DNA of 63,721 bases, filler included, from Octopus bimaculoides (lineage: Eukaryota), in NCBI RefSeq assembly GCF_001194135.2. It is 7 parts of 6 records of this genome, joined end to end, with 100 filler letters (N's around TTAATTAATTAA, not from the genome) between each part and the next. Parts side by side here need not be neighbours in the genome. Positions count along the whole stretch, not along the records: positions 52,540 to 62,300 come from NC_068984.1; 6 more parts are not named here. The stretch is one strand, 5' to 3'. This document shows positions 52,408 to 62,400 of this stretch, in pieces; within the stretch, counting starts at the first letter, position 1; each line of letters opens with the position of its first letter. The notes below the pieces were generated by a model, which saw nothing but the letters and a program-made list of their open reading frames with translations, was not told the DNA's origin and made no database searches. The position numbers and the translations under genes were made by a program.

Positions 52408-52809
52408 TTATATATACGTACGTATATATATATATATATNNNNNNNNNNNNNNNNNNNNNNNNNNNNNNNNNNNNNNNNNNNNTTAATTAATTAANNNNN
52501 NNNNNNNNNNNNNNNNNNNNNNNNNNNNNNNNNNNNNNNATATATATATATATATATATATACACACAAACATGGATGTTATGTGTGTGTGCGCGCGTGT
52601 AAAATAAAATTATATTCGTATTCTTCATCCGTGTGTGTCAAAAACTAAATAGCAGCAGCAGCAGCAGCAGCCAGCCAAGACTTATTTTTTTTCTCCACAT
52701 ACGACGACTAAGTAACAATACTGATATCAAGGAACTGGTGTCGCTAAAATGGCTATAAATATGAATGTGACGATGCCAGTTGTCTGCGTAAGTGCTTGCT
52801 GTGTGTGTG

Positions 52810-52854
52810 TCCACTACGGCTATTACTACCATCTCCAACGCTACTACTACCACC

Positions 52855-52888
<34 letters not shown>

Positions 52889-54325
52889 TGGTGTGTATTA
52901 CCACCATTGCTTACTACTACTACTACTAATACTAATACTATTCATCATCGCTTACTACTACTATTAGTATTACTAGTATTATCACTTTCTTTACTACTTT
53001 ACTACTACTACTACTAGTAGTAGTAGTAGTAGTAGTAGTATCACTACCTTCATTACTACTACTACTACTACCACTACTATTACTAACCTACTGCTGTTAC
53101 CTCTGTGACTACTACTACTATTACTACAAACTAGTATAGAACTGCTGCTGTCAATACTGCTGCTACAACAACTATTACTACTATTATTACTACCACGAAA
53201 ACGGTTACTACTACTACTACTACTACTAATGATAATAATAATATTAATACTAATGCTAATACTAATACTATTATTGCTGCAACTAGTTCTATTATTACTG
53301 CATCAACTATCACTTCTACTGCNNNNNNNNNNNNNNNNNNNNNNNNNNNNNNNNNNNNNNNNNNNNNNNNNNNNNNNNNNNNNNNNNNNNNNNNNNNNNN
53401 NNNNNNNNNNNNNNNNNNNNNNNNNNNNNNNNNNNNNNNNNNNNNNNNNNNNNNNNNNNNNNNNNNNNNNNNNNNNNNNNNNNNNNNNNNNNNNNNNNNN
53501 NNNNNNNNNNNNNNNNNNNNNNNNNNNNNNNNNNNNNNNNNNNNNNNNNNNNNNNNNNNNNNNNNNNNNNNNNNNNNNNNNNNNNNNNNNNNNNNNNNNN
53601 NNNNNNNNNNNNNNNNNNNNNNNNNNNNNNNNNNNNNNNNNNNNNNNNNNNNNNNNNNNNNNNNNNNNNNNNNNNNNNNNNNNNNNNNNNNNNNNNNNNN
53701 NNNNNNNNNNNNNNNNNNNNNNNNNNNNNNNNNNNNNNNNNNNNNNNNNNNNNNNNNNNNNNNNNNNNNNNNNNNNNNNNNNNNNNNNNNNNNNNNNNNN
53801 NNNNNNNNNNNNNNNNNNNNNNNNNNNNNNNNNNNNNNNNNNNNNNNNNNNNNNNNNNNNNNNNNNNNNNNNNNNNNNNNNNNNNNNNNNNNNNNNNNNN
53901 NNNNNNNNNNNNNNNNNNNNNNNNNNNNNNNNNNNNNNNNNNNNNNNNNNNNNNNNNNNNNNNNNNNNNNNNNNNNNNNNNNNNNNNNNNNNNNNNNNNN
54001 NNNNNNNNNNNNNNNNNNNNNNNNNNNNNNNNNNNNNNNNNNNNNNNNNNNNNNNNNNNNNNNNNNNNNNNNNNNNNNNNNNNNNNNNNNNNNNNNNNNN
54101 NNNNNNNNNNNNNNNNNNNNNNNNNNNNNNNNNNNNNNNNNNNNGTGGTGGTGGTGGTGGTGGTGGTGGTAGCGATGACGGTGACGGTGGTGGTGGTTTC
54201 GGCAACGGCGGCGGTAGCGGCGGTGTTGGTGGTGCTAGTGGTGCTGGTGGTGGTGGAGGTGACGGTGGTGCTGGTGATGATGGTGGTGGTAGTGCTGCTG
54301 TTGTTACTGTTGCTGCTGCTGCTGC
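52810..54325. repeat. (CTA/ACT)n and (GGT/GCT)n low-complexity tracts around a gap
   Basis: Direct inspection. Confidence 0.9.
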
Positions 54326-54521
54326 GAATGAACTCTTCCCTGGAGAACAATATATAATCTCACAGAAACAAAGAGTAAAATAAAAAGATAATAATTATAA
54401 ATGGAAGCGTTGTTACCGAACCGCCTACACAAAAGGCCATTATTTCTTCCTAGTTGTATAACGTGAAGTAATGCATTGTGTACCATGTGCCAGACACAAA
54501 AAGTTGTATGTTTAAGACAGG

Positions 54522-54579
54522 ATGAAAATCCTAAACAGATCGATGCTAATCTTCGTTACTGTCGCAATCCACATCATAC
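54522..54579 (+). CDS. Tentative first coding exon (signal peptide) of the knottin precursor
   Basis: ATG at 54522 follows cag|g and reads MKILNRSMLIFVTVAIHII plus 1 nt. That gives the required phase 1, joining to ...IIHSGVSA|VP. The donor (C|GTGGAA) and acceptor are weak, so the true exon may lie in gap 53323-54144 or outside this piece. Confidence 0.2.
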
Positions 54580-55134
54580 GTGGAATGCGACAATAAGGGA
54601 ACTTCACATCGTATGTGAAGTTCTCTTTGCCGTAGTTTATCTAATAATTGATTAGGCCAGTGACTCTTAACCTTTGTGATAGCGCCCACTTGGGAGCGTA
54701 GTGAACTCACAAACAGGAAGTGAAGGAAATGTGAAGGGGTAGCAAATTACACGAGGGCACAAGGATCGTGGTATTCTTATATTATAAAATCTTTGTCAAA
54801 TTAAATTATGAATAGGATATTGTTTTATCAGTAAGCAGAAACTGGATTGATGATGCACGAAGGTCCATTATATAAGTTCTCGCTTTCATGAGTAATTTCT
54901 TTCAAAATTAACATAGGAATGCACTAACTCACTTAAATGTCTATATAAAAAAAAATTTAAGAAAGAGCGCGATACATTTTGGATTGGATAATATAAAAAA
55001 ATTATGGATAATAATAAACCACAGCATAAGATTATGTTTTATTAAAATAATTTTCAGTTAGTTGAACATGTGTAAAGCGCCTTTCAAGTAAACAAGGTGG
55101 GTACAAAACGAGTCGAAAACCACGAGTGTGAGCT

Positions 55135-55300
55135 TATTTACTCAAGCCCTTCGCTCCCTATGGAACATAGGCCATCGATAACTTTTCTCGACTGTTCTCG
55201 ACTCTGGACAGTCTTTTCTGCTTCTCTACTGTTGGATTGCGGCTTTTATCCCGCCTCCAGCTATTTTTAGGACGTCCTCTCTTCCACCTCCCTTATGGAG
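55135..55300 (-). mobile_element. RTE-type LINE 3' fragment
   Basis: Minus strand reads KRGRPKNSWRR..MAYVP* followed by a short tail. Confidence 0.6.
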
Positions 55301-55963
55301 TGTTTCCCCGAGGGAAAAGCTTCCTCTACCAGGTTTTGCTGGTTTTGAATTGTCATCGATGCTTTTATAACTTTGCCTTTTTCTAAGGAGAGGTTTTGGT
55401 CCTATACAAACCTATTTTTACTTCTAGGAAGAAGTAGTCAATATTAGTCTGACCTCTATCCATTGACTTGCTCAACATAGAATTTACCAGGAGTTTCTGC
55501 TTCGCTAGCATAGTTCTCAGGATCACTGCGATATGCAAGCTTCACCATAACAAAGGCCAGGCTTGTGGTGGACAGGTGTAAACAAATCTCACAAAATAAT
55601 ATATGAAATCGCATATACAAATGCACTAAACCAGTTGTTCCTATCGTTGCGATTTTTAGTGAAGTTATCACTTAAAAGTGCGCTCACTCACCCTTTCAAT
55701 TATTTCTATATCCTTGTGCATTATTACTCGATAGGCGTTGATTCTATACTGGGTTCATTAGTACCAATCCCAAAAAAGGAATACTGAAATCAATTTGATC
55801 AACTAAACCCTTCATGGTGGTGCCCCAGTATGGGTGCAGTCAAAGGACTGAAACAAGTAAAAGAATAAAAGAATGGGAAAATGGGGTTTTATTCGAAAGC
55901 TATTTCGCTACTGGTTCTAGCTGTTCAAAAGATCACGAAAAAGCTCCTTCTTTGGCTCATGAT

Positions 55964-56820
55964 ACGAGGTGAGCTCAAAACGTATCCGACTTATTTCTTC
56001 CCGCCAAAACTAATGCCGCGTGGGTAAAATCCTTTGAAAAGGAGTTGATGCTACCCTTCCTGCGCATGCAGGAAAATTTTCGTGCTGTTATGCCTAAAGT
56101 ACAAACGTGTAGTGCGCGCTCGTCGGATTTTCGCTTTCAGAGGTCGTAACCATAAACACATATCTTATCAACAGTGATGATGTTCTTCATGAAGCTTGAG
56201 TCGTGGTTTGCACAGTCCAAAATATCCTGAATGATTTACATGCGAAGTTGCTTGTGCTGCTCCACCAGTACATTATAGGCGAATTTCACCTACACTCCGC
56301 ATGCACAAATCCTCTGTTAGAATGGAAAACACTGTTCCTCTGCTTATTCCCATTTCGTGAGCAATTTCCTAGATTGTTACACAGCGATCTTCTATGACTA
56401 TTCGCCGAACCTTCTCAAACGTCTCCTCGTTTCGGTTTGCGAATGGCCTGCATGAGCGTGCCTCACTCTTCACTGAGATACGGGCCATGTTTGAAGCGGT
56501 TGTACGAGTCCTAGATCAGAGTTTCGCCCATGGCCTCATCGCCGAAGACTGAATTTTCTGAATGGTTTGAGTTTGAGTATCACCAAGCTTTTGGCAAAAC
56601 TTGATGCAACGTCTCTCGTCGATGAAAACGAAAACCCAACGAGCACATACTACATACCTGTGCTCTACGCATAACATAGGAACTGATGAAGCCTACTGGC
56701 ACGAAAATTTTCGAGCAGGCGCAGGAAGGGTAGCGTCACCATTAACCCGAAAGACTTTGCCCGTGTGGTATTAGTTTTGGCGGGGGAAATAAAGTAGGAT
56801 ACTTTTTGAACACATCTCGT
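55964..56820 (-). mobile_element. Non-autonomous mariner derivative with long (~175-200 bp) inverted ends and a decayed N-terminal transposase
   Basis: Minus strand reads, with stops and frameshifts, RCIKFCQKLGDTQTQTIQKI..FGDEAM..SVKSEARSCRP..EKVRRIVIEDRCVTI*EIAHEMGISRGTVFSILTEDLCMR..DSSFMKNIITVDKICVYGYD (mariner HTH to first catalytic Asp region). Ends ACGAGGTGAGCTCAAAACGTATCC and its inverted counterpart. Confidence 0.85.
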
Positions 56821-56983
56821 TAAACTTATTTGACCTGAACTGCTGATATGGCTGTTGGTAAGGTACTTTGTGTGAACGTAAAAGACATGTAAAAGACATA
56901 CTCCCATCTAAGCAAGTCAATTTATATCAAAACAACCACTAAAACCAACTGCTTTTCTCTCTCTTTCTCACTCTCTTATGCAG

Positions 56984-57056
56984 ATAGTGGAGTCAGTGCA
57001 GTGCCGTCCCAGATGAAAGGCAAGCAGAACACTTTTGCTGCATCGGAGAATAACAT
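56984..57056 (+). CDS. Internal coding exon of the same precursor (end of signal peptide plus start of pro-region)
   Basis: Long polypyrimidine tract gcttttctctctctttctcactctcttatgCAG| and donor cat|GTAAGA. The 73-nt exon reads (xAT)SGVSAVPSQMKGKQNTFAASENN+AT. The final AT plus the first G of 60172 makes ATG in frame with the knottin exon (phase 1 in, phase 2 out). V-S-A|VP fits a signal peptidase site. Confidence 0.68.
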
Positions 57057-57409
57057 GTAAGAGCTTGTTGTTGTTGTTGTTGTTTTTGTTGATGATGATG
57101 ATGATGATGATGATATTTAGCACCGCATCCTCAGTCAATGCTGATTGAGCAGACCTATGATCAAAACTTAGATGTATTTTATTTAGTGCATTGTGCTACA
57201 TAATCCAATGAAATATTTTCGAAAAGACTGTTAGATTCGATTCGAGGTAAATTTCGGCTATTATTTCTAGCGCGCTTGGCAACTGCTATGGACTGCGTGT
57301 TTGCATATTTGGCTCATTGTTTCGGACCAAGCTTGTTGTCTAAAGCAGAAAAGTGATTTTTAAATGTATGTTTATATTCACAAACACACACACACACACA
57401 CACATAGTT

Positions 57410-57700
57410 GAAATTTACAGAAAAACAAAAGACGAAGACAGGTGTATAATCAATAAACAGGGGTATTCGTTTAACGCTCTGTAAGGTGAGAAAGTCTTTT
57501 ACGTTTTGAGCCTACGCTCTTCAACAGAAAGGAACACGAAGAAATAAACAGAGAGAGAATAAAAACCTTTTGGAGCTAGCGGTCAATCATGGCGGCTGGC
57601 TGGACAGAGGTAGTTAGACAGGAGAGCTAAGAAGAAGGGGAGATAGTAAAGTATTAGTGATCCCAAAACAAAGGTGCGCGTGCGTGTGTATGTGAGAGTG
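57410..57700 (-). mobile_element. Probable Penelope-like element terminal-repeat fragment carrying a degenerate minimal hammerhead-like motif
   Basis: Minus strand 57531-57496 reads CTTT-CTGTTGA-A-GAGC-GTAG-GCTC-AAAA-CG-TA-AAAG, the layout of Penelope-type minimal type-I hammerheads. Element boundaries are approximate. Confidence 0.45.
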
Positions 57701-58289
57701 TGTAAGTGTGGATAGGGGCTGGTGACTTTGACGTGTGGATTTGTGCGTGTGTGTGTGTGCGTGTGTAATGTGTGGATGTGTGGATGATGGTGTAGGTGCT
57801 GGGAAGTGGTCAGTGCTAGTGTGTGCGGGGTGGTGTGATGTGGTGTGGTGGTATGTGGTGTCGTGGTGTCGTGGTGTATTGTGACGGTGTTAGAGTGTGG
57901 GGTTGCGAGGGTGGTGAGTGGGGATGTGAGGGTGAGGATGAGGGGTGGGGCATGTGGGAGTGGGATGTGTGGGGNNNNNNNNNNNNNNNNNNNNNNNNNN
58001 NNNNNNNNNNNNNNNNNNNNNNNNNNNNNNNNNNNNNNNNNNNNNNNNNNNNNNNNNNNNNNNNNNNNNNNNNNNNNNNNNNNNNNNNNNNNNNNNNNNN
58101 NNNNNNNNNNNNNNNNNNNNNNNNNNNNNNNNNNNNNNNNNNNNNNNNNNNNNNNNNNNNNNNNNNNNNNNNNNNNNNNNNNNNNNNNNNNNNNNNNNNN
58201 NNNNNNNNNNNNNNNNNNNNNNNNNNNNNNNNNNNNNNNNNNNNNNNNNNNNNNNNNNNNNNNNNNNNNNNNNNNNNNNNNNNNNNNNN

Positions 58290-58522
58290 AAAAGAGAACA
58301 ACTACACCAAGCTACTGAGAAATTTACAGATACTCCACCCAGACTACAAGTTCAGATTCATACCCGTGATTGTTGGGGCATTGGGATATGTAACGAACTG
58401 CCTCAACAAAAACCTGGAAAAATTAGGGTTCTCAAAACCTGAAAGAAAAAGGCTGGTTAGAAGACTACAGATTTAAGCCATCAGTGGAACTGTAAAGATA
58501 TGTAAAACTTTCCAAAAATTTA
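58290..58522 (+). mobile_element. 3' end of a restriction-like-endonuclease LINE (R4/Dong-like) ORF
   Basis: KENNYTKLLRNLQILHPDYKFRFIPVIVGALGYV..LEKLG..RLQI*AISGTVKICKTF matches the C-terminal RLE pattern K..Y..L..IP.IVGALG. Confidence 0.75.
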
Positions 58523-58639
58523 ACACATAAATACATATGCATGCATCTAGACATAAAAACGCATCCATAAAACAAACATACAAATCTGCGCATACACTAA
58601 CACCAAATACTGCACACACACACATATGCACAAATACCT

Positions 58640-58875
58640 AGATGATGTTGATAAAAGTTCCAATGAAGGAGCCTTGAATCTATGTTAGAGTCCGGCTCTT
58701 TCTCTATGGACAAGAAATACAGAAATGAAACTGATTGATAACATACATACAAAAAAATACCTTGCTGTTGGTGTTGAAATTCCAATGAAGGAACCTTGGA
58801 TTCAGGTTAGAAACTGGCTCTTTCTCTATTGGCAAGGAATCTTGAAATAAAACTGAACAATGACATACATACATG
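58640..58875 (+). repeat. Two tandem ~110-bp units (probable LINE 3' UTR), with an inverted copy at 59845-59990
   Basis: Units share TTCCAATGAAGGA(G/A)CCTTG(A/G)AT..GGCTCTTTCTCTAT. The reverse complement of 59845-59990 aligns closely with the second unit. Confidence 0.75.
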
Positions 58876-60171
58876 CATACACACATACTGACAAAAACCT
58901 ACGTACATACATCATAATATATATATATATGTAAATATATCTGTCCATCAATGCACACATACACCTGCATGCCACACGCACACACACACAAACATTAACG
59001 TACATTAACGCACTCATATATTAAAAATCAATAGACTTTCTTGACTAATACCCCCACCCCTTGTTATTCTGTAGTGAACAGGCTTGAATTCTGCAAAAGA
59101 CCTAAATAACTCTCAGAGTATCCATTAATCCGTTCTCTCAACCTGTTAGCTATTCATACATAGATACATTTATATCTCTATTTGATTCAACAAAAAGAAA
59201 AATACACCCACTCCCCAATGCATGTGTATACAGCATACACATATATTTACATGCATAAAAAACGTCGATTAGTGCATTCATTATATCAATGCAAACAGAC
59301 GCTCATACTCATATGCTCATACCTACAAAATAACTGCACACACTCACACCCATGCAAATATCCACTGTCATATATGCACTCATAGACCCACACTTATTTA
59401 CAAATCTCTGGATTATCTATATTCAGACAAAGAGACCATACCACGCTGTTTGTGATAAGTTTGAATTCTGCCAAGAAGAATTTTAATAAACCCCAAGGAA
59501 AACATATGTACGATCTGCAAGCACACACGCTGTCAGCGACCAATGTAAATATGCAAGCCTATAGTAAATTTAACTCTATAGTATTGTTACTGCTACATAA
59601 ATTGCAACGATGGAGCCGTTTTCCTCATGCATATAGTTGCATATTTAGACATGCTCATATATATTTAAAGGATAAACTTCTGGAAAGTTTTACAGATTTT
59701 TACAGTTTCAATGATGGATTCGATTTGTAATCTTCGAATTATTTTTCCCTTTCTGGTTTTCAGGAGCTTAATTTTTCAAGACTAGTATTTTGGCAGTGTT
59801 ACATATCCTGGGATCCCAATAATTACAGGTAAAAACCTGAACTTGTATGTATGTATGTTATTATTCAGTTTATTTCAAGATTTCTTGCCAATTGAGATAG
59901 AACCAGTTTCTAACCGAGATCCAAGGTTTCTTCATTGGAATTTCAACATCAACAACAGGGTATTTTTGTTTTTATGTATGAATGTATGTATGTATGAACA
60001 GATTTGTATGTTTTATGTATGTCTTTTCATGCATATAGTTACATATATAGACACGTATGTATGTATGTATGTATGTATGTATGTATGTATGTATGTATGT
60101 ATGCATGTATGTATGTATGTATGTATGTATGTGTGTATAAAACTAATACTCTTATACATTCTGTTTACTAG

Positions 60172-60397
60172 GGAGCAACAAACTCCACGGTCGGTCATCA
60201 GTTCAGCAGCTGACGCTATGAACAGGAGGGATTTCGACTACTACAGTACCACATCTTTTTACGGTTACCCAGATGGGAAACGAGGTTTCTTTGAATGCAG
60301 ACCAGCTGGCAACCGATGTAGTTTCCTGCAAAGATGCTGTGGCGCTTTAAGATGCGATCGTGAGAAATTCTTCCACTTTTTCGGTCGCTGTTATTAA
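60172..60397 (+). CDS. Terminal coding exon of a secreted knottin (ICK) prepropeptide: pro-region, RR site, Tyr-rich peptide, GKR site, 37-aa six-Cys mature peptide
   Basis: Acceptor ctgtttactAG|g (AG at 60170-60171), branch-point-like CTAAT at ~60143. Reads (g)EQQTPRSVISSAADAMNRRDFDYYSTTSFYGYPDGKRGFFECRPAGNRCSFLQRCCGALRCDREKFFHFFGRCY* (TAA 60395-60397). Cys spacing C-x6-C-x5-CC-x4-C-x11-C is the ICK framework, directly after a dibasic KR. It is non-repetitive sequence between microsatellites. Confidence 0.82.
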
Positions 60398-60617
60398 ATT
60401 ATTCAAAACTTTGTCAAAATAACACTACGACAAAAGATGGAATCATGAAGAAAGAGCGACACACTGAACAAACAAGTGCCTAAATATTAAGGAACAGTGA
60501 GCAACAACATCATCATCATCATCTTTAACGCGATATAATACAGCTGCCCGTTCCTTCCACATCCATTTAATAGATAAATCGATGACTTGTGCCTAATTCG
60601 AGATTAGGATTTCGCAT

Positions 60618-60623
60618 AATAAA
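60618..60623 (+). terminator. Candidate polyadenylation signal of the knottin gene
   Basis: AATAAA ~220 nt after the stop codon; further AATAAA copies follow at ~60653 and ~60666. Confidence 0.3.
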
Positions 60624-60891
60624 AAAAAAACAATTGTAATGATCAATATTAAATAAATGATAATGAATAAAACTGATAACAATCGCTGTATATGAGAGAG
60701 AGAGAGGGAGAGAGAGAGATCGTGAGGAACTGTGAGATGGGGCACAGGTCACCAAGGGAGAGAAAGTAAGCTTAGCACTTAAGAATTTTGCGTGTGTGTG
60801 TGTGTTTGATAGCGTCAGACGTCATCCAATGATCATTGGGTGTCTAGACCTTGAACCGTAACACCCTGTTGTTGGTGGGTCGGCAGTGGTG

Positions 60892-60936
60892 GTAGAAGCA
60901 ACATTAGTAGAAGCAACATTAGTAGAAGCAACATTG
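60892..60936. repeat. 3 x 15-bp tandem repeat GTAGAAGCAACATT(A/G)
   Basis: Units at 60892, 60907 and 60922. Confidence 0.9.
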
Positions 60937-61136
60937 TGACTCAAAGGTCGATAGTTTCGTGTGTTATATACACTCTATGTACACGACAATTAAAAGACGA
61001 TTTAGTTAAACGATTTGGGCGAAGATGGAAAAGAAGGGTACAAGAAAGAAAGCATAAGCGCTTTGTGATGTGAGGTGTACAACAACATCGGATAGTCTGG
61101 TTGATATAGCGTGACTGATAAAATTATATATAACAC

Positions 61137-61187
<51 letters not shown>

Positions 61188-61289
61188 CATACATATATAT
61201 GTATATATATAGACTATATATACATGCGTGTGTATGTATATCTATACATTTATATATATATATATATTGAAACTCTATTCTCTCCAGTG

Positions 61290-61570
61290 ACCTCAACATT
61301 AGGTTCAAAATTCATCCAAGGCTAGGACCACGGGCCATACGTTCTCTACCCAATTCAGTATCACAACACATAAATACACTGCAACACAATTTCTTTTCCT
61401 CAAAAGGCTCTGCCCTATTTAACATTATTCCGAAACAGATCAAAGAGGAAAAAGGATCCCATCACCTTTAAACAAATCTGGACAAATTTCTCCGAGGAAT
61501 ACCAGATAAGCCACCTATACCTGAATACAACTCACTCAACAAGAACTCCCTACTCGAATTGACCATCATA
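61290..61570 (+). mobile_element. CR1/L2-group LINE ORF2 C-terminal fragment
   Basis: FSSKGSALFNIIPKQIKEEK..FKQNLDKFLRGIPDKPPIPEYNSLNKNSLLE, a typical CR1/L2-group 3' end. Confidence 0.7.
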
Positions 61571-61697
61571 CCACAAAACTTTACTTAAAAAAGATTTAAC
61601 AAATCCTATCAGGTGGTGCCATTAAGTTAGACATGGCCTGACCAAACTTTGGTCGAAACATATCTCAGTTATCTAAGTTATATATATATATTTGTGC

Positions 61698-61746
<49 letters not shown>

Positions 61747-62400
61747 TGTGTGTGTTTGTGTGTGTGTGTGTAACGCTACTCACTACTGGTTTTTTTACTC
61801 ATTTGTATAATATTCTTTGAATATTTTTTTGTGTGACATCTATTTCTGTTTCTCTTTCTTTGCCTCTCTTTTGCCTCCCTCTCACTCTCTTTCTCTCTCT
61901 TTCCCACTCTGATACTTTACTTCTTCCTTCGTTTTGATTTTCTATCTATCCTTCTCTTGTCTCCAGTCCTACAGGGCATTTCCCTTTGCGTAACCCCATG
62001 TCAGCCTGTCTTGCGGCCGCATGTTTTTTTTGTTTTTTGTATATGTATGTTTTATTTTGTCATTTTTGTTTTCGTCATTCTCCTGCACATTCGTTAGCTA
62101 TTCCCACTGGCTTTCTGCCACTGGTGCCACCAAGAGCGAACAGTATCAACCTTAAAGGCGTGAAATTGTAATGATTTCCTGGAGGGGGGGGGGCGTTGAC
62201 TGATGAGAAATAAGGTACGAATTTCTGTTTGTTATGCTTTTCTATTTCCGTTTGTTGTGTTTCGTTAAATTTTTGAAATATATATATATATATATATATA
62301 NNNNNNNNNNNNNNNNNNNNNNNNNNNNNNNNNNNNNNNNNNNNTTAATTAATTAANNNNNNNNNNNNNNNNNNNNNNNNNNNNNNNNNNNNNNNNNNNN

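Follow-up and report, generated by a model that had tools for sequence, protein, structure and literature searches.

ICK toxin precursors, such as those of the spider Toxin_12 family and the O-superfamily conotoxins of cone snails, consist of a signal peptide, a pro-region and a basic site, followed by a C-terminal C-C-CC-C-C domain of about 35 residues. The horseshoe-crab tachystatins A and B are ICK peptides with antimicrobial and chitin-binding activity. In cationic defensins, anionic pro-pieces balance the charge of the disulfide-rich mature peptide. The precursors of CCK and sulfakinin combine a tyrosine beside an aspartate with a Gly-dibasic amidation signal, and the resulting peptides end in …GxxRF-amide or …W/MDF-amide. 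In the oyster, Cragi-GWE, Cragi-GSWN and Cragi-prohormone-3 carry short linear peptides, detected by mass spectrometry (MS), together with a C-terminal Cys-rich peptide in one precursor (PMC8398477). The Cragi-CCWamide precursor contains acidic, Tyr-rich spacer peptides such as MYYADYDDDYYNQNKALDLF, which have also been detected by MS (PMC8398477, Supplementary Table 2).

The gene described here encodes a cephalopod precursor with the same signal-pro-basic site layout as the ICK toxins. It is found in the window (the whole stretch of 63,721 nucleotides of Octopus bimaculoides DNA that was analyzed), in a piece covering positions 52,540 to 62,300 that maps exactly to O. bimaculoides chromosome CM046604.1. 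The gene corresponds to RefSeq LOC106875128 and its product to XP_014778599.1, a protein of 120 aa annotated as “uncharacterized” that was found in the same protein cluster as the O. vulgaris match. The precursor comprises, in this order, a signal peptide, a propeptide (VPSQMKGKQNTFAASENNMEQQTPRSVISSAADAMN), RR, DFDYYSTTSFYGYPD, G-KR and a 37-residue six-Cys domain, with a propeptide length of about 55 residues. A protein search with the translation of exon 3 gave matches in cephalopods only (Argonauta hians and Octopus vulgaris). The features of the locus are as follows, with P0003 denoting a related full-length transcript assembled from sequencing runs.

56984–57056, + strand: exon 2 (73 nt), acceptor ...cttatgcag/AT, donor AT/gtaagag
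57057–60171, + strand: intron 2, with GT...AG boundaries
60172–60223, + strand: start of exon 3 (acceptor ctgtttactag/G), containing the last base of a split Met codon and then propeptide EQQTPRSVISSAADAMN
60224–60229, + strand: Arg-Arg dibasic site (AGG AGG), present in O. bimaculoides and O. vulgaris, Pro-Ile in Argonauta, absent in P0003
60230–60274, + strand: 15 codons translated as DFDYYSTTSFYGYPD, acidic and Tyr/Ser/Thr-rich, with four Tyr and a net charge of -3
60275–60277, + strand: Gly (GGG), a potential amide donor, invariant in three octopods and absent in P0003
60278–60283, + strand: Lys-Arg (AAA CGA) basic site directly before the knottin N-terminus; the junction is basic in every family member
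60284–60394, + strand: knottin GFFECRPAGNRCSFLQRCCGALRCDREKFFHFFGRCY, 37 residues, C-x6-C-x5-CC-x4-C-x11-C, net charge +4, recognized by Cys pattern, AlphaFold2 and homologues
60395–60397, + strand: TAA stop, read from the sequence
60652–60657 and 60666–60671, + strand: two AATAAA hexamers, read from the sequence; the pair (60652–60671) represents candidate polyadenylation signals of the 3' UTR

LOC106875128 has three exons, and the stretch 60224–60283 is located inside the third and last one; conotoxin genes likewise have three exons and long introns. Exon 1, which encodes the signal peptide MNTRATALLLCFFILNAMVTF, lies 16.5 kb 5' of exon 2 and thus beyond the piece, and a search for it within the piece found nothing. 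We recognized MNTRATALLLCFFILNAMVTF, at the start of the full-length O. bimaculoides protein (P0011), as a signal peptide by eye. Exon 2 completes the signal peptide and opens the propeptide, (N)SGVSAVPSQMKGKQNTFAASENN; its last two bases are the AT of the split Met codon. Its sequence is identical to residues 22–46 of XP_014778599.1 and is also the place where a tblastn with the O. vulgaris protein matches. Both exons in the window, 2 and 3, agree exactly with XP_014778599.1. The Met codon is split as AT/G over intron 2, and the Argonauta intron is found at the same place and in the same phase (ctccag/G). Just downstream, at the start of exon 3, the motifs QQTP and SSAAD.MN are invariant in octopods.

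The DNA around the gene has a eukaryotic character, with GT-AG introns and many microsatellites. Intron lengths are uncertain in the assembly because runs of N (assembly gaps) are present in intron 1 (53323–54144) and intron 2 (57975–58289); on either side of the former lie long, impure arrays of trinucleotides, (CTA)n (52841–53228) and (GTG)n (54145–54294). A (GTAT)21 microsatellite (60055–60138) lies in intron 2, about 35 nt 5' of the exon 3 acceptor, and the same repeat occurs at the same place in O. vulgaris (locus L001, 31440–31500). Its translation (YVCMYVCM...) inflates the Tyr/Cys-rich pseudo-ORFs near exon 3. We also considered an exon-like open stretch of 92 nt at 59868–59959 (LFQDFLPIEIEPVSNRDPRFLHWNFNINNR), bordered by ...ttattcag and gtatttt, as the preceding exon but discarded it for a phase incompatible with the acceptor at 60171/60172. 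It is absent from the RefSeq model and has the background level of identity to O. vulgaris (93.5%). The 3' UTR (60398–60660) is 96% identical to that of O. vulgaris, which is the local background level as well. No paralogue was found within +/-10 kb in the genomes of O. bimaculoides, O. vulgaris and Argonauta, and an Rfam scan of the piece gave no match.

The initial annotation had read RR-DFDYYSTTSFYGYPD-G-KR, with four tyrosines, at 60224–60283 and had placed it in a secreted precursor that ends in a knottin. Coordinates and sequence are exactly as claimed: in the frame of exon 3, the + strand reads AGG AGG / GAT TTC GAC TAC TAC AGT ACC ACA TCT TTT TAC GGT TAC CCA GAT / GGG / AAA CGA. The gene structure and the RefSeq identity bear out the position of the 15-mer in such a precursor. 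The acidic context of the tyrosines, likewise pointed out in that annotation, is evident from the sequence (DFDYY and GYPD, with PYDYYGEDYD in P0003) and is compatible with Tyr sulfation. When the bare motif, defined as stop-free [KR][KR]-x(5-30)-G-[KR][KR], was counted in the six-frame translation, the real piece contained one occurrence (the one at 60224–60283) and the shuffled piece 0.66 +/- 0.8. The bare RR...GKR motif is statistically unremarkable, and its weight comes from the gene context. In an AlphaFold2 model run on a six-sequence alignment, the pro-part, the 15-mer included, has a pLDDT below 50, which suggests that the Tyr-rich stretch is disordered.

The same model gives the C-terminal domain a pLDDT of 75–86, versus less than 50 for everything N-terminal of it. 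A Foldseek comparison against the PDB placed mostly ICK peptides on top (double-knot toxin, tachystatins A and B, asteropsin A, ProTx-1 and psalmotoxin), with target-normalized TM-scores of 0.55–0.69 and an rmsd of 1.7–2.4 Å; the E-values are at least 0.48 and non-significant, which is not surprising in a domain of this size. A sequence search of the PDB returned only a plant knottin (E = 0.7). Pfam gave zero matches for the O. bimaculoides protein, and all tested homologues missed the gathering thresholds of Toxin_12 and Conotoxin: the best score for Toxin_12 (PF07740) was 20.8 bits against a cutoff of 21, with 20.6–20.8 in the chiton homologues, and the best for Conotoxin (PF02950) was 21.7 against 25.1 (E = 4e-4), in Argonauta. 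The six-Cys domain is knottin-like by its Cys pattern and predicted fold but, with its recurrent yet sub-threshold Pfam scores, belongs to no curated family.

The octopus family differs from the spider and cone-snail ICK families not only in these scores below the gathering thresholds but also in its presence in a chiton and in the annelid Owenia, two lineages without venom. Its mature domain is conserved while its pro-part evolves faster, the opposite of conotoxins, and a Tyr-rich acidic pro-tail with a Gly-dibasic signal is no feature of the Toxin_12 or conotoxin families. The tachystatins are cationic like the octopus knottin and are among its best structural matches (TM about 0.57–0.62 on the target, rmsd 1.8–1.9 Å over 35–38 residues, with non-significant E-values of 0.7–1.3), but their precursor context differs and they have no detectable sequence homology to the octopus knottin. 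Two described molluscan peptides were rejected as the identity of the octopus product, clionin for its different sequence and FYFY for its 10 Cys. A catalogue of molluscan prohormones (PMC6425005) includes no such family, and the main text of a cephalopod venom preprint (10.64898/2026.02.02.703354) does not mention a knottin.

To collect the family, 1.84 billion representative proteins were searched with a profile, and a seven-sequence alignment served as the query of a word-indexed search. Its members come from O. bimaculoides, O. vulgaris, Argonauta hians, the source of P0003 and P0009, the chiton Liolophura sinensis, the annelid Owenia fusiformis and marine metatranscriptomes. P0003 and P0009 are full-length transcripts from sequencing-run assemblies (99 blocks; Logan contigs) and are contiguous through the knottin. 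Their source is probably a non-octopod cephalopod, since the knottin of P0003 is 76% identical and the QTP and AS.A motifs are shared. None of the run-derived contigs on record encodes the exact protein of O. bimaculoides, O. vulgaris or Argonauta; the abundance of P0003 relative to the octopods may reflect a much higher expression there or a tissue that has remained unsequenced in octopus. In L. sinensis, two paralogues (P0008 and P0010) with near-identical signal and pro regions are encoded on one scaffold. The Owenia protein (P0007) contains two tandem knottins and has one above-threshold Pfam match, to UPF0506, while P0004 and P0006, from marine metatranscriptomes of planktonic eukaryotes, contain four or five tandem knottin repeats.

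The seven aligned cephalopod, chiton and annelid sequences share without exception the six Cys, the Gly that follows CC and one Arg, and their mature N-terminus has the pattern G/P-[FI]-[FL]-[EDQ]-C. In every family member, a basic residue or pair abuts the knottin (KR, KK, R, RR, KR and GR), as seen in the following junctions.

Octopus: GKR/GFFEC
Argonauta: GKK/GFFEC
P0003: DYDR/PFFQC
Chiton (two paralogues): LERR/GIFDC and MSKR/GIFDC
Owenia: KRPGR/GILEC

The upstream part of the motif is less uniform. For RR, GKR and the Tyr pattern, whose conservation in orthologues had been proposed as a check on the initial annotation, the outcome is mixed. All are kept in O. vulgaris (RR-DFHYYSTTSFYGYPD-GKR, one substitution relative to O. 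bimaculoides), a comparison that is weak as a test of constraint because nearby introns and UTRs (mostly 92–97% identity) are as similar as the exon (95%). The informative comparison is the one with Argonauta, since dS is saturated; positions 60248–60412 are the sole part of the 9.7-kb piece that can be aligned to Argonauta hians DNA. Here the precursor reads ...MN-PI-DFSDYTTTTTSYYGYPD-GKK: RR is replaced by Pro-Ile, YGYPD-G-K is retained, and the 15-mer region differs by four substitutions and, in the S/T run, an indel of two residues. Despite the saturation, Octopus and Argonauta have YGYPD-G-K-[KR] without any change. The first dibasic site upstream in Argonauta is the KR with which exon 2 ends; it would delimit a 38-mer, versus the 15-mer in Octopus. 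Between Octopus and Argonauta, dN is lower in the knottin (0.16) than in the RR..GKR stretch (0.26) or the exon-3 pro-part as a whole (0.24), with an amino acid identity of 65% for the pro-part and 70% for the knottin. Within octopods the pro-part is nearly as conserved as the knottin; it is therefore constrained and no free spacer.

P0003 reads ...SSTPYDYYGEDYD-R-PFFQC, without the Gly, without any dibasic site in the propeptide and with a Pro at P1'. Compared to Octopus, its knottin is about 76% identical and its pro-part roughly a quarter (read from the alignment). In the chiton and annelid homologues the knottin is present and the Tyr-rich segment absent. The amide-donor Gly is kept in three octopods and missing in the P0003/P0009 lineage, and neither the two cleavage sites nor the peptide length is conserved among the orthologues. 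All four cephalopod sequences (P0003 counted) have exactly four Tyr and a pro-segment charge of -2 to -6, with an adjoining S/T run and a knottin of charge +3 to +6 next door. Judged by these sequences, the Tyr/Asp/Ser/Thr-rich stretch is cephalopod-specific and conserved by composition.

We favor, with moderate confidence, the reading that the 60 bases at 60224–60283 specify the final 20 propeptide residues, an anionic and disordered tail within an ICK precursor. The knottin would be set free by a prohormone convertase at Lys-Arg, a role assigned to this site because the basic junction is universal and the knottin N-terminus is conserved. The acidic stretch is probably Tyr-sulfated and its S/T run perhaps O-glycosylated. 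What selection maintains would be the Tyr/Asp-rich composition. The acidic pro-piece plausibly offsets the positive charge of the knottin, or aids folding or sorting. This is by analogy only with the pro-pieces of defensins, peptides of an unrelated fold and lineage in which the charge balance is alike (-2 to -6 versus +3 to +6 in the cephalopod sequences). In the genus Octopus, the added RR and Gly would make the 15-mer excisable and its amidation possible, and a released Octopus 15-mer is most likely a processing by-product. The propeptide reading is supported by a pro-part that changes faster than the knottin out to P0003, by the charge complementarity and by the basic junction, which is always present. 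Three points speak against it: among octopods the pro-part lags little behind the knottin in conservation, the invariance of YGYPD-G-K exceeds the need of a charge-balancing spacer and its pattern fits a C-terminally anchored amidated peptide, and one dibasic site lies upstream in each of the two octopod lineages, at differing positions.

Alternatively, the 15-mer would be a true second bioactive product, cut at RR and KR to give ...YGYPD-NH2, perhaps sulfated and co-secreted with the knottin, an octopod innovation by which a pro-piece turned into a signaling peptide. We consider this possible, albeit unlikely. The two Octopus species retain RR, the 15-mer and GKR, YGYPD-G-K-[KR] has outlasted saturating synonymous change in Argonauta, and the upstream KR of Argonauta itself would yield a 38-mer with the same C-terminus. 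In addition, the C-terminal half is better kept than the N-terminal half, like in amidated neuropeptides. The N-terminal cleavage site, however, is unconserved (with a length of 15 versus 38 residues), the middle of the peptide is a linker-like S/T run with an indel, and both the Gly and the dibasic site are lacking in P0003. The 15-mer occurs as a single copy in the precursor, without repeats, and a search for its motif strings in open full text gave no match. To our knowledge, no neuropeptide family has a YPD-amide C-terminus, and the 15-mer fits none that we know. Asp-Gly is among the poorest PAM substrates; peptides with Asp-NH2 exist nonetheless, e.g., dermenkephalin. With CCK and sulfakinin the octopus 15-mer shares Tyr beside Asp and the Gly-dibasic amidation signal, but it ends in ...FYGYPD instead of their typical C-terminus, and CCK/sulfakinin precursors, unlike the octopus precursor, carry no knottin.

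Molluscs do have precursors with linear as well as Cys-rich peptides, of which the linear ones have been seen by MS (PMC8398477). The two-component design, regarded as unusual in the initial annotation, had thus already been described in oyster precursors such as Cragi-GWE and prohormone-3 (PMC8398477). The oyster precursors share this design with the octopus one but differ in Cys numbers and patterns. Spacers of the MYYADYDDDYYNQNKALDLF type resemble the cephalopod pro-segment in composition (PYDYYGEDYD, DFDYY...). The oyster Cragi precursors, CCWamide and CLCCY lay beyond the reach of the profile search (1.84 billion representatives), and no sequence relationship was found. As for the release of a linear amide and a knottin from one precursor, the earlier proposal holds insofar as RR and G-KR bracket the 15-mer in Octopus, so that excision and amidation are possible; it does not extend to P0003, which lacks the Gly and the dibasic sites. 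A separate amidated hormone is possible in octopods alone. The full scenario, in which the acidic pro-piece of an ancient lophotrochozoan knottin precursor gained a Gly-dibasic signal and an upstream dibasic site in octopods and became an amidated, sulfated signaling peptide (…S[FY]YGYPD-NH2) co-released with the knottin, seems rather unlikely to us.

The mature knottin might also retain the acidic Tyr-rich stretch as a (sulfated) tail at its N-terminus, which would join in target binding; the junction would then be poorly cleaved. P0003 would suit such a tail, having a single Arg followed by Pro and no basic residue at -4, -6 or -8, an Arg-Pro junction of this kind being poorly suited to convertases. 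The conservation of the acidic, four-Tyr composition is, moreover, independent of the cleavage signals. In octopods, on the other hand, Gly follows a textbook K-R or K-K at the junction; RR, KR or GR stands right before G-[FI]-[FL]-[ED]-C in the chiton and annelid proteins, which have no Tyr-rich tail, and the GFFEC N-terminus is conserved like a free end. We hold an attached tail to be quite improbable.

A linear-only isoform, in which alternative splicing from a donor CGAG/gtttct (60284/60285), immediately behind GKR, to a distant 8-codon exon leaves the 15-mer without the knottin, is very improbable: this very junction occurs in the O. vulgaris model CAI9721137.1 (91 aa), whose last exon has a good polypyrimidine/AG acceptor, and the donor bases are identical in the window, but the donor is weak (no purine at +3, no G at +5), the knottin ORF that follows in the O. 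vulgaris genome is intact and in frame, the O. bimaculoides RefSeq model and the Argonauta model both contain the knottin, and the P0003 transcripts run through it without interruption. The skipping of the knottin in CAI9721137.1 is probably a mis-annotation or, possibly, an alternative isoform. The last exon of this model (VLISFMEQ*) is located 23 kb 3' (L001:31652–55034, O. vulgaris OX597817.1).

If the propeptide reading holds, the 15-mer is an ordinary propeptide and the two-component design is nothing special. The precursor then belongs to an uncharacterized knottin family, without a Pfam family of its own, that is common to cephalopods, a chiton and an annelid and is reminiscent of the toxin scaffolds of spiders and cone snails; we found no published description of such a cephalopod-chiton-annelid family. 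These knottins could be hormones, antimicrobials or channel modulators, and endogenous knottins of this kind are a candidate stock from which venom ICK peptides were recruited. If, instead, the YGYPD-amide is true, it would be an octopod-specific neuropeptide born from a propeptide, datable and traceable step by step, in a series that would lead from P0003 without signals via G-KK in Argonauta to RR and G-KR in Octopus.
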